DNA from: Schmidtea polychroa
Taxonomy: Eukaryota
Length of the DNA stretch: 64,000 bases
Reading direction: 5' to 3'
Assembly: GCA_044892525.1 (NCBI GenBank)
Contig: CM097885.1
Location: forward strand, 240,498,001-240,562,000
Both the position numbers and the translations under genes were made by a program. This document shows, piece after piece, positions 1 to 33,637 of the stretch (the first letter of the stretch is position 1; every line of letters begins with the position of its first letter). Under the pieces are notes generated by a model. That model searched no databases. It saw nothing but the letters and a program-made list of their open reading frames with translations, and was not told where the DNA came from.

Positions 1-3000
1 TTTTAAATCAGTTTTCGGAATTCTAATTAAAAAATTAATTTTTTCTTCAGGCGCCAAAGTTTTCTTTCCCGATACAATGTACGTATAATTTGTGAACGAA
101 CCGAAATGAAAATTCAATTTCAAATATCCTTGATGAATCAGATTACAAAGTGCTTTATCGAAAAACAATTTAATATCGATTATTCCAGGAAATCGATTAA
201 TCAAATCAGCGCTGTACAAATCCATTTGATTGGCCAATTCTCCAACAAGTTTATTGCCGGTTATATTTGGATTTTTGGATGTTTCCACATTATTGATAAT
301 TGACAGTGCAGATTTGTAGACATTGGTAATGTCTGCTTGTGACAATGTCGATTCTAACTTCATAAATCAAACGGAAATTATTATTTATCAAGTTACCGGT
401 ATCAGTACAAATTGAACACATTGTTTTGCAATCGTTTTCTGAATGTTTTTCACCGAATATTGGTGCAAATAAAGCCCTTTTACATACAATTTCATCAAGA
501 CAGTATTGATTAATTATTTGCAGATTTTTAATGCCAACTTTCTCAGTAAATAGATTTGATGCGAGTTTAAAATATTCCGATAACTTCCAAAACAAAATAC
601 AATCGGATCTTTTACCATCTCGGCCTGCTCTACCAGATTCTTGGTAGTAATTCTCTAAGCTTTTACTCATAGACATATGGATGACAAACCTCACATTTGG
701 TTTATCAATGCCCATTCCAAAAGCTATTGTAGCAACAATCACATTACATTCCTCATTTAACCATTTATTGTGTACATCTCTTCTATATTCATAACTCGTA
801 TTGGCATGATAAAAACATGCATTGATACCATTTAATACCAACTCATTGGCAAGGGTTTCACAGTCTTTTTGCGTAAAACAATATACAATACCTGAAATAC
901 TGAGCTTTGATACTAATAATTTTGTTAACTAAATAAAATATTTTTTTGAGTTTAAAAATATATGGAACAAAGGGATCTTGAATTAAAAATAACTTTACCA
1001 GTTTATAGCGTGCCCAGAAATCCTGTGGTGGATCAACCATATATCCAATTTCTTTTTTTGCGACTTAATATAACAATTGGATCAGGGATAGGGACAGAAA
1101 ACGAGCATTCCAACATATTTTGGATTTAGTAGAAGAAAATTTAGGATCATAAAAGTACATTTCAATTTATTATAAATTTAAAGTTAATCCGTAATTAAAC
1201 ATACATGGCAATGATTTAATTATAAGAAAGCGCTACTCAAACATTCGGGTGCTTCTTCATATTCTATCGAAAGGATGATGAACCTAAATTTGTGTTGGTA
1301 TTTGTATTGTGTTGCTATGTTTATTTCTATTATTTCCCACGAAGCTGTAATTACAGTTTGTCGTCTGTTAACGTTTACTTGTTCGAGATCTACCGAACAG
1401 AAATAATAAACTATATAGTTAATTCTCTATAGTAAACTATTACTATAGAGAAATTTAAAAAAGAATAATAATAATAAAATTTATAACACAAAGTTCAAAA
1501 ATTATCAAATAAAGAAACAGACATTTCCCGTAAAATCTTTTCAGCTATTCAAAAGGATATCGGATTTAAAAAGAATCGATAGAAACTATAAATAAATTTA
1601 TAATCTAGAATAAAGTAAATTGGGAAATTGCAAAATCCAACAGTTATAATTTAGAAGCTCTCCCAAAGACTAGTCAAGGGATTAGATCAAATACTCGTAC
1701 AATTTGGAACAATACACTTAACCTTTCATATCCCATTATTATTCGAACTCAAAAAGTTTATTCGAGAATTGTGGTTGTATTTAGTTCATCGAGTTACATA
1801 CATGCACCCCAATTGTCCCGACAAAATTTTTTAACGACGACTCTATTGGGCTCTTCCGTTTCTTAGCACAAAACATAATAACAAGTAACAAAATACAATA
1901 ACATTCGACGAAACATAATATCAAATAACTACGCTCGTTAAGCCTTCAAACAGTATTGCCGTACCCAGAAGATTTTACAGATTGTAAAATAAAGATAAGC
2001 CCAAAATAAGCAGTTGGAGAATTTTAATTATAAGATTGTGTAAAATTCATGTAAAGTAGGCAGTATGTTTATCAATAAGTCTGAAACTCCGGTCGGATTG
2101 TGTTCGGATCTCGTTTATAAATTTACATGTAATGTGTGTAATGCCATATACATCGGAGAGACTTCCCGTCATCTCTGTATTCGAACTTGAGAACATTAAC
2201 GACAGAAGGCATTGGTCAACATAAATGAGCACAATAAGGACTGTAAGAGTAAAATAGGTATATTATAAGAACTTTATTTCTTCAAATTTTCACCACTGAT
2301 TTTTTTTCCATTGAATTTATTAAAAAGAGAGTTTGAAGACTATAAATCAGTAATATATCGATGCTTGTTGATACTCACGAATTTTCGGCACTGCCTTTTT
2401 CAAGTGTATTTGATCATTATGATATATATCATAATAATCAAATACACTTGAAAAAGGCAGTGCCGAAAATTCGTGAGTATGTGTTTCTCTCAATTGTTGG
2501 TCGATCAAGATATTAAGGAGTTATGGTTAGTATGGGTCAAAAAGATAGCTGTTTTGGTGATGAGGCTCAGTCTAAGAAATGAGTTTTAACTTTGAATTAT
2601 CCAAACTTGTTACAAACTGGAATTATATGGGAAAGATCTGGAATCATACATTTTACAATGAATTTCGAATTGCAGTAAAAAAGCATCCAGTTATTCTTAC
2701 CGAAGCGCCACTGAATTTAAAAGCTAACAGAGAAAATAACTCAACTCATGTTTGAAATATTCAATGTTCCTTTTATGTATTATGTTATCAAACTGTTCTG
2801 TCGCTTTATGCTTAAACTGCCATTGTTTTAGATTCCGGAGACAGTGGGACACGTACTATGCCAATTTATGAGGGTTATGTGTTACCTCAATGGTTATTTT
2901 AGAATAGATTTGACTGGGAGAGATTTGACAGATTATTTGATGAAAATAAAACAGAAATAATAAATTTAAATACGAGAAAGCCCCAATCAAACATTCTTTT

Positions 3001-6000
3001 CACGATTTATTTCGATAGATTTCCTATAATCGTCAGGTAGGATATAATAACTATATAAATTAAGGATTTTTAAACCAATTTAGTAATTGTATTAATTATT
3101 AATTATATAGAAAAAAGAATTTTTAATAAAAATATTTCATTCTTTTAAAAATTATATTTCAAATAATATATTATTTTTTTAATCTTTAACATACAAAATT
3201 TAATTTAATAATTTATTAATTATTTAATTTAACAACAACAATCGATACATACAATATACAAAAAATTATTTAAAAACATTTAAAACACAAGTATTAAAAT
3301 TAGGCTAGTATTTAATTGAGCATTAATAATATATTGAATGAGCATTAATATAATAAAAATTTAGCATTAATTTAATAACATTATAGAAATTATTTTTGAG
3401 CATTAATTTATTTAAAGAACTACATTAATATAAATGAAAAAATACATTAGATAAAAAAGGACCATTATTTAATATTATTTTAAAATTGAAAAACCATAGA
3501 ACATTATTTATAAAATTGTCATTGTTATTGTATTAGTGAAGCTGTTTTAGCTTTCGTAGGTCTACCTTTCTTCGCTTGGTTCCAATATTTTTGGAACCAA
3601 GCTTCTAACTCATCCAAACTTATACTGGGTGTTCCATATTCTTTACTTTTAAACTGCGACAAAAAAATTGGTAGTTGTTGTTTCGTTGCTGTTCTAAGAC
3701 TCAATTTGGTTTGAATTTCAGTTTGAATAATTCGCAAATTTCTTTCTTTGTTTCTTCTTTAATGTCTGTTGTTCATGGTTGTTCATGTTGATGTTCATCA
3801 TTTGTAATAAACATAGTTACAGTTTCATTGTCACTGTGATATAGCAAATGAATAGCGACTGGACATCTTTTGGCTTGATTACATCTGTAGTATAATCTCT
3901 TGCCTTTAACTGTAATATTTGTCATTGAAATGTTCCAGATTTCATCAATCTTTATTTTTTCTAAAGCTTTTTCCTTGTTATATTCCTTATTTATTATTTC
4001 CTTTGAGTGTTTTGTTTTAGAAGCTGTGTTGTCTTGGGTGTTGTCTATCTCTTCTTCTGTATCGCTTGTGATTGAGCAATTTAAAACTTTAAATTTGAAA
4101 ATTTAATGCTCATTCAATTTAATTAATGCTAAATTTTTTTAATTCCCATTAAAAAAAATTAATGCTCATTTTAATATAATTAATGCTAGTATAAATATAA
4201 GTGTATTAAAATTATTAAAATTTAAATGTTAATTATTTTTAATAAATTGACTAAAAATATTTAAACATCAACGGGCCAAACTTTACAAAAACACCATTTC
4301 TTTTTGATAAAATGATTATTTTATATTTCTACTATATTTTCAAATTTTGTTAAAACTAAATTCTCTTTCGAATTTATTTATATTTATCCCCATTATTTAT
4401 CATCTATATTTCTATTAATCTTTAGTATTAATCACAACATTTCTTGTATTTATAGAATCCATCAAATAAATTAATTCAAATTAAAATAATAATCAATGAA
4501 TAAGTATGGATTTTAGCATATAATCATAAATTTATACAACATTTAATAATAATTTAATATAAGCATTTTAAAACATCTAATTTGTTAACGCTTTGATTTT
4601 ATTCACAATAAATTACCTGATTGTCCAACATATCGACTTTTAATTAATTTGCATACCTCTTGGCTATCTTTATCTTCATGGGATAAAAATTTTACCTAAT
4701 GACAAAGTTTAATCTAACTAATGGAAAAGTATTACATCATAAAACAGATTCGGGCGATTGTAAACATCTCGATAAACCAGACAACCCACATTTAGTCCCA
4801 AAATTTCCTTTATATCATCTATTATGGCATCAGTAGCAGTTGCCGTTAATCCAAGAATTGGAATATTTGGAAAAAGAGATTTGAATATGTGCAACCCTTT
4901 ATAATCTGGTCGAAAATCATGGCCCCATTGACTACAGCAATGGATTTCATCAATGACAATCCGGGCGATTCGATTATCAGCATAGGACTTTTCAATTGCT
5001 TTCATTAATTTCTTACTTTTTGAAATTTTTTCAGGTGTGACAAAAATCAATTTATACTTCATTTTGTCGACCTAAAATTTAAACTTAAGGTAAAAGTTCA
5101 TTAAAGATTTTCTGTTCAAATATTTCTTTTTATTATTAACATATACGTATGTTAACCTGTTGAATTCTCATAGCAAATATATTCGCTTCGTACAAATCCT
5201 TACCATTCTCTCTATATTTGACGAATACATTCCACTGGGTGAATTTACCTCAAGTTATTGATTGTGTAAAATATAAAAAATATCTTTAATGGGGTGTCCC
5301 TTAGTACATAGCAAAAAAATGAAAGTTATAATTTCAATTCTGGCACCAATCCAATCTGTGCCAAATATAGACATATTGAATTGTGCAAAATATCTTTACA
5401 ATTGGACAATATTTAGAGATGGCCTTTGGTGTTTAAGTTTTGTAAGTAAATTTTAAAATGCCATAGTTTCCTTGCGTGCTTAATTCAGATTTATTTGACA
5501 CACAATCACACCCAACAGCCTGTAAAAGTTCAGTTTACTATTACATAGAATACTATTACTGATTCAAAAACAAATCCAACTGCACATGTTCAGAATTATG
5601 TCTCTGCTAGATTGTCAACTGTTCATCCGTGTTACTGTCATTTCCCAGTGTTAAAGATTCCTTAAAAATTATAATGCTACAAGAAAGTAGAGAATTAAGC
5701 ACTATTGATTACTCTGATTCATGTAATGAATTTAATTATTCTGGTAATTTTATGGAATCAACATTAATGGAATGTCCGAACAAGTAAAACAAGAAGTATT
5801 ATGGAGAGATCTAATACTTAACAGCTGATAAATAATTTTTTCTGTCATTTTTAAATGCCTTTGGCTAGTTTTATAATAATATTAAAGATTTTTGAAATTA
5901 AATAACATGATATTTTAAAATATTTAGTTAGATATGAAATAATATTTCAATTATAAGTAGCATGATTATATTTTACCGGGTCGGATTGCATTGATTTATA

Positions 6001-17132: not shown

Positions 17133-19290
17133 ATGAATAGTAAATGTTTTTTACGAAGATAATCAATTCTTATAATTCATTTTAATAGATTCTCATACTC
17201 AATCCACTGAAATAGATAAAAGAATTGTTGCTATAGATAATGAAATTAAAACTCTTACACATGAAAAAGAAGATTTAATAAAGAAAAAGAAACGAGTATT
17301 TTAAATAGATATGTATGCATATAACATTTCTAAAACTTAGTTATCTATGCCCACGATGTCTAATAAAGATTACGGAAAAGAAAATTTTCCATGGTCGGCA
17401 AATATTAAAAAGTTGTTGCAAGATAAATTTAAATATAAAAACTTTAAATCATTACAATTGAAAACTATTAATGCCACTTTGGATAAATTAGATTGCATAT
17501 TTATATCTCCACCCGGTAATTTAATATATTATTATTATATGAAAAAGCTGGCTTTTTAATTTGCTAAATTATGTTGTAATTTATAATGCTCTTAATTTTA
17601 TAAGATAAATGACTAATCAATCGATTTAAAGCCTCCAAATTTTGCAGAATTAAAGACCCTATTGCCAAAAACTTATTAATTAAATCTGAGTATTCTAGCT
17701 TTATTATAGTTTGAGATATTTAAATGTTGTTATTGTACAGATATATAGATAGATTCTTAAAACTATTGAGGTAAAAAGTATCATTAAAAAAATTTTTGGA
17801 ATACAAACTCTCGCAGGAAATGCAGATTAAATTACTTAAATTTCAAAGGAGTATTTTATCACACTGTATTACAGAACTCAACCTGAAAGTATTAGGCTAC
17901 TCAAAAGGAATGTAAAAATCTATAGGAGTCTTAAAACAATGATTTCCGATGATCCAAAATAATTGAAATTGAAAATTGGTACATATATAACGTTGTTGGG
18001 AAATTTTAATGCAATGAAAGCACTATTGAGTGGTACAAATTTAGTCATAAGAAACCTTTACCAAAAATTCTGATTCTAATTCTAACTCAGTGGTTCTCAA
18101 TTAATATAAAAGCGCGGAACACCATTCACATGATTTTTTTGACGCGGAACACTGACAAAAAATACTTCCCATAATGAGTGACCAATCACAAATTACTATA
18201 AATCTGTCGTAAACGTAAACAATGCCTTCTTATAAGCAAAGAAAATACCACGCGCAACAATAACAAGCAATAAAAACACTTTTATATTTGTATATTTATA
18301 TATATCTGTGTAACGGCTTTCTTATTGAATCATCTTATAAAAAAATTAATTGAGGTTTTTGATGATATGTATCTTAAATGCAAATTTAAAGATAAAATGT
18401 CATTTTTTTCGCGGAACACTGGAAGCGTAATCGCGGAACACGGGTTGAGAACCACTGTCCCAACTGGTAGCAACAAGAGAGAACGAGATTGTATATTTCG
18501 CATTGATTAAGAACTAAGTCAAAGTTCACTGCCACGCAGAATGTGATGCCATAAATTACTTGTAATTTTACCTTTAGTTATGATGATCAATCAATCTTTT
18601 GATCATATTGTATTTATCTTTCTGAGTCTGTATCTATCCCATTATCTGACAAGGAAATCATGAGAATATATAAGATTTTGCTGGAATAATGAAATAATAA
18701 ATGGCCACCATTATTCAAAAATCCACGCAAAAAAGTGAAGCTCCCTTCTAGTTATAAAATCGATAGACCTGTTGATTGCTTTTCATTATTTTTCAACGAC
18801 GAAGTAATTGAAATAATTGTGAAACATACAAATATTAAAGCTACAAGAAAAATTGGTGGTAAATGGAAAAGGACTACCCCAATAGAAATCGGCGCATTCA
18901 TTGGACTCCTACTTACCGAAGGTGGTAATAAGCAAGGAAATGTGAATTATGAAGATTTTTGGGATCCCCTTTTTGGAAGCCATATATTTCGCGCTACTAT
19001 GGGTATATGGCGTTTCAAGTCAATTTTAAGATTTCACAGATTTGATGACAAGGAGACTAGGTCAGTGCGCAGATTCAATGATAAATTGGCTCCAATTACG
19101 GAAATCATAAATAAAAATTTCTCAAAATATATTATTCCAGGCCAAAAGTTAACAATTGATGAGCAGTTGGTTCCTTTTCGTGGATGAGTAAGTTTCAAGC
19201 AATACATACCCAGTAAACCAAATAAATATTAAAAAAAATTTAACATTTTTCTTTTAAATTTTTATGTATTAACATATATTATAATATATG

Positions 19291-19359
<69 letters not shown>

Positions 19360-22300
19360 ACTGGACATGGAAGGGTTTAAAGGCATTCTAAAATATTTGC
19401 ATAAGTTCCCCATAGTCAATTGATAAAATTTAATAGAATAATATATCAGAGGAACTTTCGTACAGAATACGTTTATTACCGTATTACTTCGAATATAAGC
19501 CACCCTCGAATTAAGGCCTCACTAAGGTTTTATGATAGGTATTTTAAATAGGATTAAGTAAAAATAAAAATGCTTTAATAATAAGGTTGGTCAGACAAGT
19601 GTGCACAAGACATATCTTCACAATGACAAGTGCGCTCGATGACAAATGCTCACATAGACAAATTCGCACAAGCTTATTATTATAATTTAATTATTATTTT
19701 ATTATTATTATAAATGCATGTATCTACAGAAGTTGTTTTGATCATGATATATAACAAATACTCTCTACACATTGGCAGTCAGATCAATCTGAAGGTCAAT
19801 ATAAAACTATTTACTGTAAATTCATATTTTAGTCTTGTGCGCACTTACAATGAAACCAATAATAAGGTGTTACATAATCTTTTTATTTAACCTTATTTAA
19901 TCTTCTTCATACACATCATCACTTTCGACACCTTTACACCTCATCTTCACTGTTGCACCAGAGTACATCATCTTCGGTACCGTTTAAATCATTAGTTATG
20001 CAACATTTGAACTTTTTTTCCCAATTTCACCACTGATTTTTTTTTCATTGTATTTATTAAAAAGAGCTTGAAGACTATAAATCATTAAATATATCAAAAA
20101 CATCGATATAATTACTGATTTATAGCTTTCAAGCTCTTTTTAATAAATATATTTTTATTTCCGCTACAAAGGCTTTATTCTTCCTCAAAACGAGGAAACA
20201 GATATAATATTGTTTTTATCTCTCGAATTCGATGTTTTATAAATTGCTTATTACATCCAATATAAGCTACACCCTAATTTTGCACAATAAAAATGTAAGT
20301 AAAATTCGAAGTAATACTGCTCATCAGTTAAATAAAATATTGAATTCATTAATATAACTATGTTAACTTATGCATTTTAAGGCAGTGGAAAAAGCTTATG
20401 TTACCAATTAGCGTCAATGATTTCAGGATTTACGTTAGTTATTGCCCCATTGGGTTCTTTGATACATGATCAAATGATTCTGTCAGAAAAGTTTGGTATA
20501 TCATGTATTTCCCTTGATTCTAATAGTTCTGTAAAAATACAGAATGAAATATTTAAAGTCATGGAAACTGATCCGGTATTTTTAAATTACATAATAATAA
20601 TATAATAAAAATAATAATAATAATTTATTATAAACTAGCTATATAACTATTTTACTATGACCTGGATGTTTGATAACTGATGCAAACATATTTGTATGCA
20701 ATGAAGTGAAGTAAGTATGTATGCGATCTGTATCAATAAACTAATAATACTCCGTTTTATTGATTATGTAATTGAAAGTCCTATAGTACATTGTTTTAAA
20801 ATACGATAAAAAGCGTGAAATTAATTGTAATATGCTTTTGAAATAAAATTAGATCAAATACGAACTATTATTATCAACAATTGTTGTCATTATTTATAAC
20901 AACATAAATTCTTTTCAATTCATATTCTTAGATGTAATTACATTGCAATATTATTCAATTATTTCCATACTAACAAATAATTCATTAACAATAAACTAAT
21001 CAAGAATATTGATTACAAATTTTCAAAATTTTATTTAAATATGCTTTAAATTTTTAAATTTTATTATTGATCTTTATAACAATTAGTTTTAAAAATTATT
21101 TTATTATATTTTATTACATATTATTTAATCAAAAATAATAACTTTTATAAATATATATTTTTATATTTATTAAAAAAATTGACTATGAATCAGTAAAGAT
21201 ATCAATGTTTTTTCATATTCATGAATTTTCAGCACAATCTTTTACAAAACACTTGAAAAAGGCTGTGCCGAAAATTCATGAATATCAAAAGAAAAAATCA
21301 ACCATAAAAATATGGTTTTTGAAACTCTTAATTTCAACATATTTTAGATATAATTACGTTATCTCTTTAATCTGAAGTTAATGAATAAATAAGAATTTAT
21401 ATTGAAATAAGGAAATAACACTAGATTCGACATATCAATATTTTTTAAATTAACCAACTTTCCTTGATCTTATCAATATAGAATTTTGATTGCATGTAGT
21501 GTTCTCGACATCGAATCTACTTTTCAAATTTCAGCTCAATTCGATCACAGAAAGTAAGTTAATTTGGCCCCACGAACTTGGCGTGGCACATACAAACATC
21601 AGCGAAATTAATATAGAGTAAAAAACATCGATATCTTTATTGATTCATAGTCAATTTTTTTAATAAATACAATGTCAATTGAAAATAAGTCAGGATGAAA
21701 ATTGAAAAACGTTTTTATAATTATATTTTTGTCATTATTTGGATATTGATTTATAATTTTCTTTACCCTGCCATAGTGCCCTAAATTTGGGTTTTTACTC
21801 CAAAGCAATGCTGAAATTTCTCATTGACTTGGTTAAGAAACACTGAACTAATCAATACGTAGTTATTTGATTAGAAATTTTAAAATTTGATAGAATCATT
21901 TTTTTATAAATTTAGTATGAAAAATTATAAAATTTAAAAATACTTTTTGAATCCAATAATTTTTCTATATTTAAACTTCGAACTTTTTAACACATAAATT
22001 AAATTTTTTCACTAAATTAGAATAATTTTATCATTAAATTTGCTTATAAACAATATCGTAAAGTTCAAATAGTGTCAAATATATTTCTTGAAAAAATATA
22101 TTTTTAAAATTTGAATTTAAATAATAACTTATATTTCAATATATCTTATAGTATATAAAAATGAAAGTATGTGTTTGTATAACTTCAAATTACGGGTAAA
22201 AGATAGACAAAGGTATTCAATTTTTCAAGTTAAAAACACAAAAGACCGAATTAACTACTAATTCATTTTCTTTACTATACTAATTCGCTTTTTTAGACAA

Positions 22301-25300
22301 TTTTAGAACGTTTGTATTTTTTTGATTTTCTCATTTTTGTCTCTATATTATTTCATTCTTTCGTCACGGTATATCTGGATTAGTATGGTATGGCGGAATA
22401 GGGTGAGGTAAGGTGAGATGGTAACTTCGTAATTTTTGTACAGAAATGAAAATAAATAAATTTTCATGGCCGCTTGTAATATTTTTTTAATCTTCCAAAT
22501 AGCCCGGTAGCCTAACATGTACTAAATAGTATATTTAAAGGTTTTATTATAATTTTTATTTCTAGCAATTTAAAATATTTGAAAAATTGAAAATTACTGA
22601 ACTCACTAATTTAATACATTTGAAATCAATAAACAATAATTTACTACAAAAAATATTTAAAAACATTCAAAATACAACTATTCACATGATTTTGCTCATT
22701 AGTTTTCAGATTTAACGATTTTATCAACAAACCTTCACCAATTACATGTTTCCAATAATTATTTTGAAAAATTAATTAATTTACAAATCAAATATGTCTA
22801 TTGTACTATACAACTCTTATTGTGGATGATGGAAGTCGCTCCAATATATTACAATCTATGAATGTGAATTGATGAACGAGATCTGAATACAATCCAACCG
22901 TAGTTTTAGATTTATTACTACATATATTGCGTACTTTACATTAATTAGATACAATCTTTTCCCAACTACTAGCTTATCTTTCTCTTATAATCTGTAAAAC
23001 TTCACAAGTACCACAATACCACCACAAATTTAGACTTACAGTCTTTACACTGACTATTGAATTTAATCACCTTACTATTCAACTCATCCACATCAATCAA
23101 ATTACACCCAGGCATTCTCAAACTTGAATTCTTAGGATTTTTAATAAATTTGTATTCTTTCTTTAATTTTTATAAGTTGACTCATTTTAAATAATCATTC
23201 GTTATATCTACCAATAGGTTAAGTTATTTCTAAAAAATATTATTCTAACTTCTGATCTAATAATTTGTTTTTATGATTCATTCTTATTTTTGAAACAAAG
23301 AATTTAAAAACTTATCTTAAATTAAAACTAATTTAAGTAAATTTAATATATTAAAATAACGATTTAAATTTTGTATATATTATATTAAAATCAATTAAAG
23401 TATTTGTTACCAATCTCAGCATTAATATCAGAATTACAAATAACTCAGCTGTTTGAATGTCTGAAAACAAATTGGGTTTTTTTTTAATTTTTTATGCGTG
23501 CATTTAATTAAATCTATTAATAATAATTAAACTTAATTTAGATAGATAATGTAACATATAAATTGATTTACACAACTCCGGATAAGATTTCAAACAGTAA
23601 AAAGTTGACGAAAGCCATTGAAAAATCATATGGTGATAAACGTTTAGCGAGACTGGTTATAGACGAAATACATTGCTGTAGTGAATTAAGTCATGATTTT
23701 CGTCAAGATTATAAAAACCTTAATGGGTTGAAATCTCTTTATCCAAATCTGCCAGTTCTTGGTTTGACAGCAACTGCAACTAATTCTGTCATCAATGATA
23801 TCAAAACGACTTTAAATTTAAATTCTGACTGTTTGGTCCATAAAGACAATTATAATCGATCAAACATCTTCTATGAAGTAAATATTGCCTTTTCATATTT
23901 TTGAAAATATAAAATTATCAGGTTAAGTTTTTATCTAATGACAAAAAGGAAGGGGAAGAAATTTGTAAATTGATCAAAAGTCGATTTGGTGGTCAATCAG
24001 GTTAGTCATATAATAATTATATTATTAATTATAAAGTGATGATTTTTCGGTAGCAGCACTTATTATTTAAAACAATAAAATGATAATTTAAGCCTTTTGC
24101 TGCGAATAATGTATTTAATGAAAAAATTTTCGACTATAAGATAGTCCTTGTCAATCTCCTGGAATTTAGCAATGTTCTTTCCAAAAATACCTTTCAATCT
24201 TTCTTTTATTTCCTTTCTCTTAATTCTCATTGGTTGTAAATATAATGAATTTTTTTATTAAAAACTTTTAAAATTTTACTGAAAATTAAAATAAAAATAA
24301 AATATATACCATTTAAAATTCCAAATTGACACAAACAAAAAATTTTTAAATTTTTTTATACAGCTTCTATAATTAGCTTTAGAAGCCTAATAAAATATTT
24401 CAAAATATTCTAAATAAAGCCTCCAATAACTACTTATATATGCTATTTAAATATTTCAATAAATGGGTCAATTCCGATTTTCAAATCCAATTTTTTATTA
24501 AATTTTTCTATATTATTTTTATTATTACTTTTTAATTTATTATATATTTTTTTTAATTTCTTTATATATTGTCAGTTATTCTCAAGGTCAATGACAACAG
24601 ATCAAATTCACGATTTCATTGATTTCTTCTTTAGTGTTGATCTTTGGCTGTCTGTTTATGATGAGAATTGCTTCTTTGAATCTGACATTTTTTTGGATGT
24701 TTCCATTAGCTATGATTTCTATTGAAATATTTTTTCTTTCCTCTGTTGGCTGACACTGCTGGAGATGTCTGCCCAACGAGGATGTTCCACCAAGATCTAG
24801 GTGTTCTTTAACTCTTTGGTGCAAGGTCCTGAGTGTACTTCCAATGTAGATTTCATTGCATACATTGCACGTGATGCAATAGAAGATGTTTTTTCTAAAG
24901 CACACATCTTTCGGTGTCTGGCAGTTTTTCATTGTGCAATTTTTTTCTCTATTTATGTTGCCTGCCAGAGCCCTTCTCAATGTCCAAGATTTATGTGCTA
25001 TCCGAATTGGAAGACCGGTACGTTTAAGTTCTTCCAGGATCTTGAAGTCGAGTATGTCACTGATGGGATATTCAGATAGAAATATTTCTGATTCTTTTGT
25101 GTTAATTCCCTAGATCTTTTGGGGTAGAATTCATTCTTTCAATGTCCTCACCCATATATCCGTTTCTGTGTAGGATTTTATTGAAATTTTATTGTTCTTT
25201 AAAGTTTTCGTTTTTTTCCGTGCATCGATTGGCTATTCTTCGTTTCTCGTTTCTTATGACATGTACTTTCTGTAAGTATGGAAGCGCTGATCTTTGATGC

Positions 25301-28300
25301 ATAAATATTTCTTTTTTTCCATACTTATGTAAGGAACAGAACTTTAATGAAAAATGGACCAACAACTAAAACAAGTAAACAACTAAAAAGATCTTGAAAC
25401 CTTTATTGGAAACCTTTATTGAAATATTTAAATAGCATATATAAGTAGTTATTGGAGGCTTTATTTAGAATATTTTGAAATATTTTATTAGGCTTCTAAA
25501 GCTAATTATAGAAGCTGTATAAAAAAATTTAAAAATTTTTTGTTTGTGTCAATTTGGAATTTTAAATGGTATATATTTTATTTTTATTTTAATTTTCAGT
25601 AAAATTTTAAAAGTTTTTAATAAAAAAATTCATTATATTTACAACCAATGAGAATTAAGAGAAAGGAAATAAAAGAAAGATTGAAAGGTATTTTTGGAAA
25701 GAACATTGCTAAATTCCAGGAGATTGACAAGAACTATCTTATAGTCGAAAATTTTTTCATTAAATACATTATTTGCAGCAAAAGGCTTAAATTATCATTT
25801 TATTGTTTTATATTATTAATTGTTATTGTATTATTATTATATTAATTTTTTAAGTATAAAGTGATGATTTATTGGTAGCATCATGAATTAAATTTTAAAC
25901 AATTAAATGATAATTTAAGCCTTTGCTGCGAATAATATATTTAATACAAATTAAAAAATTTTCCACTATAAGATAGCTCTTGTCAATTTCTTGTAATTTA
26001 GTTTCTTCTATTTTCAAAATGCCTTTTGATCTTTTCTTTTATTTCCTTTTTTTACTTCTAGTAATGATATCACATTACAGGCCAAAGACCAATTGGCGAA
26101 GAACATGCAAACGCAGATGGATTATCAAGGATCGAGGGTAGTTTATGTGCACAGTGTCAGACGGCACATGTACAACATAAAAAAGAAAGATCAAGAGCAA
26201 GATATATCAATTTGATACAAAAAACACAATGTTAGAAATTATGGAAAAACAGAAGAAAGATAAATTGTTTCATGAAGCGATGGAAATTCTTTGGAATCAG
26301 ATAGATGTTTGGAAGGAATAATTTCTAAATAGTTTTTTATTCAGATATAAAGATAGGTTAAAGATATCGGATGATATGCTTGTATTGGAATCAGACAAAA
26401 TAGATCTAGTGATAATCCCAAAAAGCTATCAATCTAAACTAGTGATTTATGTCACGTTGAAATTAAAAAACTGTATTATTATTTTTAAAGGAATTTTTTC
26501 TGGCCGAAAATGCAAGAAACCGTTAAAGAGTTAGTAAAACGATGTGTCACATGTCCAAGAAGTAAAATAGACCAAGAGAAGACAAAGGAAATTTTAATTC
26601 CACACGAATGTTCTGAATTTCTAGAACATATTGTGATGGATGTTGCTTTCATGGAGAGAACTTCAACCTACAAAAAGTATGTTATCGTTATTATTGATAG
26701 GTTTAGCAAATTAGTAAGTCTAACGGCTACAGCAAACCAAGATGAAAAAACTATTTTCAAGACGCTAATGAACAATTGGATTTACAAATATGGTAAACCT
26801 CAAAGTATATTGACAGACAGAGGGCGAAATTTTGAAAGCAAATATTTTAAGGAAAAATTAGAACAACTTGGAATAAAGCAAGAATTCGCCTCACGATATA
26901 AACATCAGTCGAATGGCTTAGCGGAAACAGCTATCAGAACAATGAGAGATTTACTTGTGACGACGATGAAAGGGGGGCTCTGCTGAAAAACAGCGGCCCG
27001 AACTGCTGCCTCGAATTGAATTCAGTATAAATGCAACTTATCAAAATGCTACAAAATATTCACCATTTGAGATAATATATGGACAGAAAATAACGTTCAC
27101 GCTAGTAGGTAGTTATGTGCACTCCAGATCCAGACCCCCCCATAATTTTAAAATTTTTTTTAAATTTTTAAAATACCCCCCCCCCATACTTTTTTTTTAA
27201 TTTTTGTTTTAATTATAAATTACGTAATAATTTATAATTTTTAATCACCGATTACGTAATAATTTAATTTTGTTTTAATCATTGATTACATATTACTCTT
27301 AATTTGTTTGAATCATCAATTATGTAATAATTTTTAAAATTTTTAAATCGTTGATTACATCATAAATTTTAATTTTTTATAAGAATTTTTTATTTCAATA
27401 TACTTGAAATTTAATTCTCTATTAAATGAGACTGTGATGTAATCAAAAATCTGAAATTTCATTATTAGTACACCATTTTTGAATTTACACATCTTTTTAA
27501 ACAAATCTTTCTCATTCATTCATTCATCTTTATTGAAATATTTACAAATTAACATGTTTTAGTTACAAAAATAGTTATCAATAAATCGAGTAAGGGTAGG
27601 AAATTATTTAGAATCAATAAGTAATACACAGACCTAGATGACTAGTTAACTATATGTGTTAGCACTGTACTCAAAAGTGTTCATATTTTTATTATAGTGT
27701 TTTTTATTTGGGGTATGTGAGATTTCATATCAGGATATTAAATATTTATATGAATTCGAATTTCTGTTTGTCACATTAAATATTATTAAATAAAATTTCT
27801 CTCGGTTTTATGAACTTAAAAATTATTATTGAAAATAATAAATCTTATTGATAAATATATTATTTTTTTTTAAGTTTATTCAATTCTCAACTATGTTTCT
27901 CAATATTCTATAAATTGATAACATGTTATTGCACTACTAAAACTTACTAATTTCTACAACTAATTCATAATTAATTCGAATAACATGTTAATTTAGAATT
28001 CTTAAATTTAATAAAACTTATGATTATTAAGTATTATTTTAAAAAACATAATTTAAAAACTTTGTAAGTTTAATTTTAATCTATTTTAAAAAAAAATTAA
28101 GATTTCTAGTTATGAAGTTTCATAATTTTTGAAAATAATGAGTGGTAAATGTGAATAATTGTCAACTCAAACAATAGAATTTAAAACTCTACAAAATGAC
28201 ATCATTATTTATTCACACTCAAAACACCTAAACCTTTTTTCAGCCAAATTTTATATACACATTTAAAAAATATAATACTATACTTAAGAAAACCTATTCT

Positions 28301-31010
28301 CATATTAAAACTAAACATTTATTAAAATCATGAGAAATTCGATCGTTATCTATTGATGATATGACCTAACCTATAGAAATTCGTCAACAATTAAGGGTAA
28401 ATTTTTAAGGAATTATATGTCAATTTTGAGTAAATAAAAAATGAGCTTAAAGCATATATATTGCAATGAAAATATGCGTCTTATTAGGGTTAGTAAATAA
28501 AATAAAACTTATCACAATGTAAACCATATTTTTAATAATTATTTAAACTATAAAAATCAAGACAAGAGAAGACAAGGCAAAGTTTATGCATTTATTATTG
28601 CCAGGCCTAATGAGCAGTGACCAAATATCTGTGCCTGAAAGACACGGTGGATATTTGTTCGCGTCCACAAGGGTCGTCTGTGCCTCTCCAAAAATTGACA
28701 TATAATTCCTTAAAAATTTACCCTTAATTGTTGACGAATTTCTATAGGTTAGGTCATATCATCAATAGATAACGATCGAATTTCTCATGATTTTAATAAA
28801 TGTTTAGTTTTAATATGAGAATAGGTTTTCTTAAGTATAGTATTATATTTTTTAAATGTGTATATAAAATTTGGCTGAATAAAGGTTTAGGTGTTTTGAG
28901 TGTGAATAAATAATGATGTCATTTTGTAGAGTTTTAAATTCTATTGTTTGAGTTGACAATTATTCACATTTACCACTCATTATTTTCAAAAATTATGAAA
29001 CTTCATAACTAGAAATCTTAATTTTTTTTTTAAAATAGATTAAAATTAAACTTACAAAGTTTTTAAATTATGTTTTTTAAAATAATACTTAATAATCATA
29101 AGTTTTATTAAATTTAAGAATTCTAAATTAACATGTTATTCGAATTAATTATGAATTAGTTGTAGAAATTAGTAAGTTTATTAGTAAGTTTAACATGTTA
29201 TCAATTTATAGAATATTGAGAAACATAGTTGAGAATTGAATAAACTTAAAAGAAGAAGTAAAAACGAATAGCAAGCACATTGCGCAAAAATTGAGGAAAT
29301 TTGGAGCGTAAAAAGAATTAAACGACATTTCGAAGTGGGGAAGAGGTACTGGTAATACGAGAACCACATAGAAGAAACAAAAATTATATTCAATATGATA
29401 GTCCATATAAAATTCTTAGATTTGTGTCAAATCATCAAGTTGAATTGCCAGATACGACGCGGCACCAACGAATCGAATGGTTAGAGATAGCATCAATCTT
29501 ATGACGGGGAGAGTAATGATATTACATTAGAGTTCAAAGACCAATTGTGAAGCAGTTCAGAGTATATTGCTAACATACAATGTGTTAGTTATTGCGCAAT
29601 ATACATTACTATTTAAGAGTGATCACTCTGTGTTAATAAATAATAAATCTTAGGAAAATTGAAAGGTTACACAGAACTATTAAAGAAAGCATACGAACAA
29701 AAGCCAGAGATAGAGATTAATTAGAACAATTACTAACAATCATACTGGGATTAAGAATCACTCTCTATTCAATAGACAGTGAAAGCCCTGCATATAAAGT
29801 TTTTGGGTAGAGAAACAAATTTACTTTCATTAGAAACAATTAGCGAAAATAACAAAAAAACAGCAAAACAAATAGCAACTCAAAATAGCGAATTCGACTC
29901 AAAAGAAAGACAAAAAATATAGCACACGGTGAAGTACTTTTTACCACAGGATACGTCTAAGTAATAAAAACCATTCACGAAACGATTCGAATCAAAGTAT
30001 GAAGGTCCATACAAACTACTCGAATTAAACAAAAACGTGGCCACAATATTAAAAATAACAAAGAAATGCGAATAAATATATGTAGATTAAAACACTACCA
30101 CCAGACAAAACAAGACCCATATAATATACTAAAGTTTAGTTTTTAAAGAATTTATTTCCATGGTTACTATTACTATTTTTTTTCAAATTTAAATGGAAAA
30201 TCAACGATTTTATTACGATTTTATTTTGATTTGATTTATGCCAATTTGCAAATCTATTAGAACTTAGAAAAAATAAAACCAAAAACTTGAAAAAATTTCC
30301 GTATTTTTAAATATAAATGTGAGTCATATGCTCGCGGACCCTCAGGGGTCCGCTGACCACAGTTTAAGAACCGCTGCACTAAACAACAACAATCAAACTA
30401 AGCTAAGACACATTTTTTCAACAACCATGAAACATTACAATCTTCCAATAAAAACACCCATACACTAAACACATACAGAAAGCAGTACATTAACTGTTTC
30501 AAATTATACAGCATATAGAAAACTAAAATCAAACAAACAATTGTAAATTGTACAACTTTTATGTTTAATCTATCGTTTGGTTGTAACACACAAACCACAC
30601 TAGACAACAATAATATAAATAATAAAATGATAATTTAAGCCTTTTGCTGCAAATAATGTATTTAATGAAAGAATTTTCGACTATAAGATAGTCTTTGTAA
30701 ATAAGATGTATATTTTTATTCTGTGGTTGCATCAATCTTATGAAGGGGAGATTAATAATATTACATTAGAGGCCAAAGACCAAATGTGTCGCAGTTCAGA
30801 GTATATTACGTAATTCAATACAATGTGTTAGTTATTGCGCAATATACATTACTATTTAAGAGTGATCACTCTGTGTTAATAAATAATAAATCTTTAGATG
30901 GAACCTATTGTTGCAACTCTTCTCATTGGTTAAAAATAATAATAAACTTTTCTGAAAAATTTAAAATTTTATCGTTTTATTTTTATAATTATATTTGTAA
31001 TTGTTTTATT

Positions 31011-31064
<54 letters not shown>

Positions 31065-32519
31065 TTATCATTATTTTAATTTTATTATTATTTTTTTATA
31101 TTATGATAAATTAAAATTATTAATTATATTAATTTATCATTATTTTTATTTTTTTATATATTTTTTTATTATTATTATTAGGCTTTGAATTATAATTATA
31201 CAGTTTGGCTATAAAAACTAGTTTGTATGTTTTTTTAAATGTTTACAGGAATTGTGTATTGCTTTAACCAAAAAGACTGCGAAAACCTCACTAATGAGCT
31301 TGTAAATAATGGCATCATAGCATCTTCATATTATGGAACATTGAGCCATGATGTCAAAAAAGATATTCATAATAAATGGCTTAATGAAAATTGCAAGGCA
31401 TTAATTACATTTATCTAAAAGTGTAATATATAGTTCGAATAATTCAGGTAATTGTTGCCACAAATGCATTCGGAATGGGCATTGATAAACCAAATGTGAG
31501 GTTTGTCATCCATATGTCTATGAGTAAAAGCTTAGAGAATTACTACCAAGAATCTGGTAGAGCAGGCCGAGATGGTAAAAGATCCGATTGTATTTTATTT
31601 TGGAAATTATCTGAATATTTCAAAATTGGTTCAAATCTGTTTACTGAAAAATCCGGACTCATAAATCTTAATATTATGAATCGATATATTTTGGATGAGT
31701 GCACTTGCAAACGGGTATCTTTCTCTTTGATCTTAGATGAAAAATTTAATGAAAAGGATTGCAAAAAAATGTGTTCTGTCTGTGCTGATACTGGTAAATT
31801 ATAATTATTTTATTTATTATTCTATTTATTAATTATTTATTTCCANNNNNNNNNNNNNNNNNNNNNNNNNNNNNNNNNNNNNNNNNNNNNNNNNNNNNNN
31901 NNNNNNNNNNNNNNNNNNNNNNNNNNNNNNNNNNNNNNNNNNNNNNNNNNNNNNNNNNNNNNNNNNNNNNNNNNNTTGCAGGATTTAAGAAATTGACAAA
32001 GGCTATCTTATAGTAGAAAATGTTTTCATTTATTTTAAATATATTATTCACAGCAAAAGGCTTATGTTAGAAGCCATAACATTCAATTCTTCTGTCATCA
32101 AATAAATTACTAAGACTAAATAAATCCAAAATTATATTTCATTAAATCTGCTTATATAAATAATTGTTCTTGGGACATTTTCTTTTTATAAATTTTAATT
32201 TCAACCAAATATCAACATCCCACATTCATACTTGAATTGCAATTTTATTAAAAATTATTTTATTTCAAAATTAAAATTAAAATATTCATTTTAATTCTAA
32301 TATATTTCACATAATTTAAGTTTCACTTTTAATTTTACAAAATTTAATCATGAAATAATTTTAATTTAACATTTTAATTGTAACTCTTCACATCTTAAAT
32401 TATCATTTAATTGTTCAAAATAGCATTATTTTTATTATATTAACTTTGCTGATGTTTGTATATGCCACGCAAATTTTGTGAAGCCACGTTGTGGGACACG
32501 TCATCAATTAGGACCTGTT

Positions 32520-32566
<47 letters not shown>

Positions 32567-33637
32567 CGACCGTTATTTTTGCATATTGGCAATACTGATT
32601 ATCGAAGTTTGACAACTCCTTCAAAGCGGCCGGTTGGGCATGGTATAAAGAAATTCGGGAAACACTGGATTAAAGAAATAACGTACTTATATCTAAAATA
32701 TGTTGAAATTAAGAGAGTGAAATAGAGAGTTTCAAAAAAGTTTTTTATGGTTGATTTTTTATTATTTAAATTTATTATTATATATTTTATTATCTTTAAT
32801 TATTTTTTTATTAATTAATTATTTTTATTATTTATTTTTTTATTTTAATTTATAATTATATCTTTTAATATTTTTATTTATTTACTAATTAATATTATAT
32901 ATTAATTTGATCGTTCTTTTTTGTTACTTATAATTTTTTTTATTTATTTATTTTTATGTTTTATGGTATATTTTCATATTATTATTATTTATCAACATTA
33001 TTTATATAATTTTATTTTATTATAATATATTTTATTTTTTTAATTTAAACGTCTTCGTAATATATTTAATTATTATTTTTATTAAGTATTTCTATTATTT
33101 ATTTTTTGAATATATTTATTATTATTTTATATTAATTATTTTTATTATTAAAAATAAAATTTTTATTATTTTCACTCAGAATCTGAATTGTCATCAATCG
33201 ACATTACTGATATATTCACAACTGCATTGGGAATTATTAAAAACATAGAAAAAACCAAAAATCCAAAAATTACTGGTAATAAAATGATTTCAGAACTGGC
33301 CAATCAAATGAATTTATATAGTGCTAATTTGATTAATCGATTTCCTGGAATCGATTGTAAATTGTTCTTTGACAAAGCATTTTGTCATTTGGTTCTTGTT
33401 GGCTATTTGAAGCTGGATTACAGTTTTGGTTCATTTAGTAATTTCACCTATGTAAATGTCGGAAATAAAACTCTGAAATCGGAAGAGAAAATCAATATTC
33501 CAATCCGAGTCTCTAAATCGGAAAAAATGCAAAATGTTAAACAAGATGAATTATCGAATATCAAGAAAAGTTCTTTGAAACGGCTATTCAAAGGTTCGAA
33601 TCAAGATATTTCGGAAACGAAAACTCAAAAACGTTAA
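17133..33637 (+). CDS. RECQL: RecQ1/RECQL-type helicase paralog, copy B (9 exons, 616 aa, divergent aromatic loop)
   Basis: Exons 17133-17139, 17189-17295, 17341-17515, 20382-20575, 23542-23877, 23922-24000, 31249-31397, 31448-31793, 33180-33637 total 1851 nt with no internal stop. Exon lengths 194, 336 and 79 are identical to copy A. One GC-AG intron (31398-31447). Motifs [30 protein letters not shown] and the Zn cysteines are present. Confidence 0.92.
18088..18457. mobile_element. hAT (Charlie-type) MITE
   Basis: TIRs CAGTGGTTCTCAA / TTGAGAACCACTG with an imperfect 8-bp TSD (TTCTAACT / TCCCAACT). Confidence 0.85.
18690..19230 (+). mobile_element. piggyBac (PGBD4-like) transposase fragment
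   Basis: ORF 18735-19187: [67 protein letters not shown], then [14 protein letters not shown]. Confidence 0.9.
19295..19357. repeat. (TA)n microsatellite
   Basis: Long TA run. Others occur at ~7436-7462 and ~32522-32560. Confidence 0.95.
19479..20319. mobile_element. Non-autonomous Tc1/mariner-pogo-type element with nested repeats
   Basis: Inverted ends C(C/A)GTATTACTTCGAAT, TA on the left only. Contains a Penelope-tail fold-back at 20020-20150. Confidence 0.45.
21180..21310 (+). repeat. Copy of the Penelope terminal repeat with a hammerhead-like motif (21250-21280)
   Basis: CACTTGAAAAAGGCTGTGCCGAAAATTCATG, the same family as 2445-2475, again set in a partial inverted duplication. Confidence 0.7.
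24069..25810 (-). mobile_element. 5'-truncated Penelope-like element with ~385-bp inverted pseudo-LTRs
   Basis: GIY-YIG ORF 24588-24980 ([40 protein letters not shown]) with decayed RT thumb/linker sequence upstream ([18 protein letters not shown]). 24069-24452 is the reverse complement of ~25415-25810. Confidence 0.88.
24120..24158 (-). ncRNA. Minimal hammerhead-like motif, second family, in the Penelope pseudo-LTR
   Basis: gaga-TTGACAA-G-GACTAT ctt ATAGTC-GAAA-ATTT-tttc: U3:A8 core variant, 6-bp stem II, AATT palindromic helix III. A mirror copy at ~25719-25758 has a stem II mismatch. Confidence 0.6.
25880..26045 (-). repeat. Further copy of the 24-kb Penelope terminal repeat
   Basis: ATGATAATTTAAGCCTTTGCTGCGAATAAT..CACTATAAGATAGCTCTTGTCAAT. 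Additional partial copies occur at ~30625-30700, ~31976-32065 and ~52450-52515. Confidence 0.8.
26060..27100 (+). mobile_element. Ty3/Gypsy pol remnant (RNase H end, integrase)
   Basis: [11 protein letters not shown]; ORF 26510-26986 with [37 protein letters not shown]; continues [27 protein letters not shown]. Confidence 0.9.
27868..29251. repeat. Long inverted repeat: ~560-bp arms (27868-28427 / 28691-29251) with a ~265-bp spacer
   Basis: The arms read as near-identical reverse complements (one small patch and isolated mismatches seen). Confidence 0.92.
29252..30100 (+). mobile_element. Gypsy integrase C-terminal remnants (two pieces) around a short LTR-like repeat
   Basis: [18 protein letters not shown]; [12 protein letters not shown]; [15 protein letters not shown] ~165-bp repeat starting with a GGGGAGA polypurine tract occurs at 29489-29652 and again at 30729-30893. 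Confidence 0.65.
31846..31975. other. Assembly gap (130 N) in the last intron of RecQ copy B
   Basis: Run of N. Confidence 1.
32063..32290. repeat. ~230-bp dispersed repeat, second copy at ~63719-63995
   Basis: TGTTAGAAGC.ATA.CATTCAATTCTTCTGTCATCAAATAAATTACTAAGACT...GGGACATTTTCTTTTTATAAATTTTAATTTCAACCAAATATCAACAT is shared. Confidence 0.85.

Follow-up and report, generated by a model that had tools for sequence, protein, structure and literature searches.

A 125-nucleotide tract identical between two ancient, inverted RECQ1 paralogs points to recent interlocus gene conversion over helicase motifs V and VI

The window analysed here, a stretch of 64,000 nucleotides on a chromosome-scale contig (C1:240498001-240562000), carries two RECQ1-type helicase genes in inverted orientation. 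The two coding sequences have diverged extensively, yet one short segment recurs in both without a single difference. The locus raises the question of how two old paralogs came to share a block of sequence in which even the silent positions agree. Direct comparison of the two regions bore out the observation of an earlier note, made from the sequence alone, that the reverse complement of positions 594-718 equals positions 31472-31596 letter for letter. The identity covers exactly 125 nt and does not extend by one base on either side, a mismatch standing directly outside each end, and 8-nt identical runs adjoin both borders just outside the tract. In the first gene (copy A) the tract occupies 594..718 on the minus strand and in the second (copy B) 31472..31596 on the plus strand, the two being about 31 kb apart on one chromosome. 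The tract is in codon frame, comprising 41 codons plus 2 nt, and its product of 42 residues spans what we take, from general knowledge of RecQ helicases, to be motif V (a 15-residue string) and motif VI (10 residues). A search of the whole 781-Mb genome placed the segment at these two loci only, and a multi-copy or transposon-borne RecQ family was rejected on this ground.

Exons of the two genes downstream of the N-terminal coiled-coil exons were mapped by translated comparison of open reading frame pieces between both regions and by reading of the splice sites. The genes are divergently transcribed in a head-to-head arrangement, copy A from the minus strand and copy B from the plus strand, and the reading frames of both are open over about 571 aligned codons. 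In copy A the upstream coding exons (9137-8984, 6170-5977, 5071-4736 and 4695-4617, minus strand), which encode the DEAD domain according to Pfam, are followed by a fused exon (397..891) that corresponds to exons 5 and 6 of copy B and encodes the Helicase_C and RecQ_Zn_bind segments, by a 43-nt GT-AG intron (354..396) and by the last exon (1..353), which runs about 113 nt past the window start to the stop codon, the missing end being taken from L001. In copy B the upstream coding exons (17362-17515, 20382-20575, 23542-23877 and 23922-24000, plus strand), assigned by exon mapping and Pfam, are followed by exon 5 (31249..31397), a 50-nt GC-AG intron (31398..31447), exon 6 (31448..31793; exon mapping and Pfam), which carries the tract, and the last exon with its stop codon (33180..33637). 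Exon translations of both copies matched the Pfam families DEAD (PF00270), Helicase_C (PF00271) and RecQ_Zn_bind (PF16124), and the last exon of either copy gave no Pfam family match. Among solved structures the best matches of both copies were entries for human RECQ1 (9i22, 2v1x and 4u7d; E ~1e-47). Judged from sequence, by domain core, zinc-binding segment and nearest structures, both copies are classed as RECQ1 (RECQL) helicases of the RecQ family, whose DEAD, Helicase_C and RecQ_Zn_bind segments they possess, together with the motif VI string inside the tract; they differ from that family in being two diverged paralogs instead of one gene.

A phase-0 intron lies just before the residues V-I-V-A-T, with GC-AG borders in copy B and GT-AG borders both in a flatworm contig (L004) and in a contig from a distant animal (L005). 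At the copy B intron an RNA-type contig is colinear with copy A, whose fused exon lacks an intron here; the equivalent point in copy A falls between 742 and 743. The position common to copy B, L004 and L005 indicates that the intron is ancestral and that its loss from copy A was precise, at a point 24 nt upstream of the tract. A cDNA-mediated event linking this loss to the tract was considered and rejected: six A/B mismatches lie within the 24 nt between the lost-intron position and the tract, which argues that the intron was lost in a separate event.

Several repeats and possible mobile-element remains were observed in the introns. Within a copy A intron, positions 1151-1450 are a very high-copy repeat (in sequencing run X1 the summed contig word depth reaches 1.5 million, and loose ends are numerous at 1192-1302), and positions 3773-3925 on the minus strand, also inside a copy A intron, hold a Cys/His-rich open reading frame of 50 residues, perhaps a zinc-finger fragment from a mobile element. 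The large intron of copy B (24001-31248) contains long inverted repeats (24062-24484/25394-25816, 97% identical; 28037-28427/28691-29081, 94%; 27940-28096/29023-29179, 100%) and a 158-residue open reading frame (26510-26986) that appears integrase-like by eye; the repeats and the reading frame are probably transposon remains.

Against this gene structure, the divergence of the two coding sequences can be compared inside and outside the tract. Over the 571 aligned codons the copies share 63% of their residues and 70% of their bases (512 of 1713 sites differ), and the exons other than the tract-bearing one, which the earlier note had judged far more diverged, were measured at 65-73% DNA identity. 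Outside the tract the Nei-Gojobori method gives a pS of 0.69 (dS ~1.9, effectively saturated) and a dN of 0.27, whereas inside it none of the 24 silent sites differs. Where both copies encode the same amino acid with degenerate codons, the codon is identical in 38 of 38 pairs inside the tract versus 174 of 314 (55%) outside, an excess with P ~2e-10 that becomes 10^-12.3 when per-amino-acid rates are used. The background of 55% is close to the 51% expected for fully randomised silent sites under the genes' own codon usage.

The length of the identical run is likewise exceptional. Elsewhere in the alignment the longest identical run is 29 nt, against 125 nt for the tract, and the tract's run of 41 identical codons is followed by a second longest of 9. 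Permutation of the codon columns in 200,000 rounds produced a maximum run of 17 compared with the 41 observed (P < 5e-6), and an analytic estimate for the identity run was ~4e-15. In terms of the GENECONV criterion, the 125-nt tract is an identity run longer than the surrounding divergence predicts; in terms of silent sites, it combines identity inside with diverged flanks. The rest of the tract-bearing exon is at background (same codon in 27 of 49), so that the borders are sharp, with no halo of similarity around them, which argues for one sharp event and not a gradient. Immediately downstream, 4 of the next 10 codons show silent-only differences (TTG/TTA, AAG/AAA, TCG/TCT and TTT/TTC), just as the earlier note had counted. 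GC3 is 0.34 in the tract, 0.26 in copy A and 0.27 in copy B, values that are uninformative on the direction of any transfer.

One further stretch of raised similarity was observed in the last exon (exon 7), where 60 nt (182-241 in copy A, 33292-33351 in copy B) are 90% identical and contain the 29-nt identical run as well as 12 successive codons shared by both copies. This region of low pS (0.365) may be a second, older and eroded conversion tract, but it is not significant (permutation P 0.10).

An identical patch could be produced in consensus building if one locus were overwritten by the sequence of the other, the real copies differing in the tract. Both loci are read from one assembly, and mis-polishing can create short identical patches between paralogs; the earlier note had named read collapse and mis-polishing as points to check. 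Logan contigs from four sequencing runs (X1, X4, X7 and X9), each from another study, were placed on window positions 1-1500. In X1, X4 and X7 a separate contig of exactly 125 nt lies on 594-718 with 0 differences, and copy A flank contigs stop at 623 and restart at 689, which is 30 nt inside the tract. This branching of a k=31 graph at both borders is that of a stretch sitting in two different contexts. Contigs to the left and right of the tract carry letters of copy B type (569, 578, 584, 593 and 719-749), A- and B-type flanks each overlap it by 30 nt, and the contigs of the four runs reported no alternative letters inside it. In X9, a 1874-nt RNA-type contig (record 24) reads B flank, tract, B flank with no difference inside the tract. 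Contig depths, which the tool cautions are not copy numbers, were 103.5 for the tract, 49.2 and 50.6 for the A flanks and 38-42 for the B flanks in X4, and 173 for the tract versus 53.8 + 119.9 in X7, both agreeing with a stretch in two contexts; in X1 the tract contig has a depth of 214, a value to which the flank depths do not add up.

The same contigs carry a polymorphism close to the tract. At A-coordinate 578, 16 nt from the tract border, the B-type contigs of X7 read C>G, and copy B of the window, X4 and X9 read C>A, a silent change. X7 differs at this site but not in its borders, so that the tract is common to two or more B haplotypes. One of the DNA runs compared may be the assembly's own source; nevertheless, contigs from three studies break exactly at both borders with a stand-alone 125-nt contig in each, a transcript-type contig crosses from B flank to B flank, and a run with a different B-flank allele preserves the borders. 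Independent public contigs thus show the tract in both genomic contexts, and we consider an assembly or polishing artefact extremely unlikely. Spliced contigs were also present for both copies, with the 43-nt intron of copy A removed (353 joined to 397 in X7 and X9 contigs), exon 6 of copy B joined to exon 7 (X7 record 18) and the 50-nt intron of copy B removed. Provided that X7 and X9 are RNA runs, which is the tool's guess, both genes are transcribed and correctly spliced.

Given that the identity is real, silent sites could still have been frozen with no sequence transfer, by purifying selection at the nucleotide level on an exonic structured RNA, a small-RNA target or a splicing element. 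The tract is predicted to fold more stably as RNA than shuffled controls (z -2.45), and among 80 windows across the coding sequences of both copies the most stable predicted folds, with the lowest z-scores (-2.6 to -3.4), are those over the tract. However, the ortholog in the GC-richer flatworm contig L004, the sole relative with DNA, shows 28 differences from the tract in 123 bases, almost all at silent positions (pS 0.98), indicating that the interval is not generally frozen at the nucleotide level. Its equivalent stretch has a z of -0.74, and 12 of the 37 predicted pairs are broken in it with no compensatory changes. A search of the tract against Rfam gave no match, the sole hit having an E of 0.94 on the opposite strand, and a conserved structured RNA or cis-element inside the exon is not supported by Rfam or by the pairs broken in L004. 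Moreover, constraint would have to preserve all 125 bases with an abrupt start and end inside an exon, and it would leave unexplained why all 42 amino acids are identical where about nine differences are expected (see below), which a transfer does explain. The earlier note had named equally low dS in unrelated RECQL orthologs as a result that would count against conversion, and L004 shows the opposite. Selection on the nucleotide sequence is therefore judged very unlikely. We treat the stable predicted fold as a by-product, leaving a slight chance for an RNA-level constraint peculiar to this lineage.

These results are best accounted for by one interlocus (non-allelic) gene conversion between ancient RECQ1 paralogs, recent in evolutionary terms and without crossover, a reading to which we assign a probability of roughly 0.85. 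It is essentially the proposal of the earlier note, a recent ectopic conversion between the inverted copies; the statistics fit it, and neither of the two findings named there as refuting it was obtained. According to this model, a break or gap in one copy would have been repaired using the inverted paralog as template, and no more than 125 nt of a single exon, covering helicase motifs V and VI, would have been overwritten, silent and amino-acid differences alike being replaced. All data sets sampled from the species contain the converted form. The event is taken to be of the non-crossover type because crossing over in this inverted arrangement would have flipped the 31 kb that separate the copies.

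Comparison with relatives bears on the age and direction of such an event. P0121, a 330-residue UniParc protein, is the copy A ortholog of a sister species: it is 87% identical to copy A over the C-terminal half, has A-type flanks, groups with copy A in a tree of the flanks (support 98/97) and matches the tract residues at 42 of 42 positions. L004 groups with copy B at 89/82, with uncertain rooting of the tree and one copy found in its run. The full-length alignment (A1) was used in place of the fragment alignment (A2), which had misaligned exon 5/6. Protein searches with the exon 5/6 piece, with P0121 and with the full-length profile A1, together with a scan of cluster representatives, yielded P0121 (protein only, with no contig on record) and P0001/L004, and found no sister-species copy B ortholog or sister-species DNA. 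Two high-scoring proteins, P0317 and P0318, were rejected as orthologs, being internally duplicated gene models of other animals.

Silent divergence since the sister-species split was estimated at ~0.2-0.85 from the protein distance between copy A and P0121 and the dN:dS ratio between copies A and B. A conversion older than the split would then leave an estimated 4-12 silent A/B differences in the tract; as none is seen, the last conversion would be younger than the split. The lack of any difference at the 24 silent sites puts dS since the event at no more than ~0.125 (95% upper bound), compared with at least 1.9 for the whole genes.

To gauge what an unconverted copy B would look like, alignment columns were graded by the match of 18 other animal RECQ1 proteins to copy A. 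On this basis about 9 differences between an unconverted copy B and copy A would be expected over the 42 tract residues, and complete identity would have a probability of ~1e-5 (a hand product of class frequencies). With about nine differences expected and none seen, the event probably erased protein differences as well. A transfer from B to A would require the original B residues to have been of A type everywhere, which is unlikely, so that transfer from A to B is favoured. The donor would most likely be copy A, the more canonical copy, whose sister ortholog has the same 42 residues, and the recipient copy B. This assignment leans on the rate assumptions, on a single event after the split and on one protein (P0121), and we hold it as probable with some reserve.

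The awkward point for the conversion account is its initiation. Homologous repair between sequences that are ~70-80% identical is normally strongly suppressed. Identity around the tract is ~70-78%, and no long pre-existing identical block is visible, the longest outside the tract being the 29-nt run. The tract might instead be the product of recurrent or ongoing conversion at this spot (a conversion island) or of a replication template switch between the inverted copies, and no direction could be assigned in either case. Flanking identity of ~75-78% makes a single homology-driven event hard to start, and earlier conversions would supply the homology; nearby inverted arms favour template switching, and the 8-nt identical runs lie just outside both borders; and exon 7 offers a weak second region of low pS. 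However, there is no similarity gradient around the tract, codons in the rest of the exon agree at the background rate, and the exon 7 signal is not significant. As for a template switch versus synthesis-dependent repair, the sequence gives no feature that distinguishes them. Recurrence or a switch appears unlikely to us as against the single conversion. Going beyond that reading, it is conceivable, though we think it fairly improbable, that homeologous recombination is unusually permissive in this flatworm lineage, allowing paralogs of ~70-78% identity to exchange short patches, or that the patch was selectively retained as a 'catalytic-core rescue', a diverging paralog with ~9 drifted residues there having regained motifs V-VI, and with them the motif VI arginines, from the canonical RECQ1 copy.

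The earlier note had suggested that conversion, and not selection, may be what keeps the motif VI arginine finger of copy B. This suggestion is half supported: transfer from A to B is the likely direction and about nine amino-acid differences were probably erased, but one event is not maintenance, and a single patch amounts to no maintenance mechanism. Furthermore, the reading frame of copy B is intact, the pair has a dN/dS of ~0.14, and spliced RNA-type contigs represent the gene, so that copy B appears to be transcribed, is spliced and evolves under purifying selection. Relative to L004, lineage-specific changes in the C-terminal half number 34 in copy B versus 24 in copy A, and copy B is not significantly faster; at columns at least 90% conserved in other animals, outside the tract, copy A keeps 82% and copy B 76%. 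Upkeep of motif VI in copy B by conversion instead of selection is not established.

The RECQ1 tract is a fresh example of a known process and reveals no new mechanism. It is of moderate interest for the age of the paralogs and for its position on catalytic motifs, and as a clean, independently verified short-tract conversion in a very old pair of paralogs, with each border known to the base, it helps to calibrate how much divergence recombination tolerates. Trees, dN/dS estimates and 'conserved motif' arguments that involve copy B should mask the 42 tract residues, whose conservation in copy B would be borrowed and not evolved.

Similar patches are known from conversion between the arms of inverted repeats and palindromes and from micro-conversion by diverged paralogs or pseudogenes, for example CYP21A2/CYP21A1P and the MHC genes. 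Like the tract described here, these are non-reciprocal transfers, tens to hundreds of bases long, from one non-allelic copy to another on the same chromosome, and the intervening DNA is not inverted. The arms in such systems are, however, usually more than 90-95% identical and undergo repeated events, whereas the RECQ1 copies are ~70% identical and share a single patch.

The RECQ1 tract may also be set beside conversion in C. elegans, where GENECONV-type tracts have been described between linked paralogs in either orientation, at moderate divergence and reaching into regions of ~77% identity; the cases reviewed include the survey of Semple & Wolfe (1999), hsp16, col-12/col-13 and fog-2/ftr-1 (PMC3966223). 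The likeness extends to a run of complete identity far beyond what the flanks predict, to linked paralogs for which inverted orientation is allowed, to the reach into ~77% identity, and to short tracts, the fog-2/ftr-1 maxima being 93-102 bp (PMC3966223). The RECQ1 paralogs differ in being much older, with saturated silent sites and 70% DNA identity, in lying 31 kb apart, and in sharing a single tract, placed exactly over catalytic motifs V-VI of a DNA-repair helicase.
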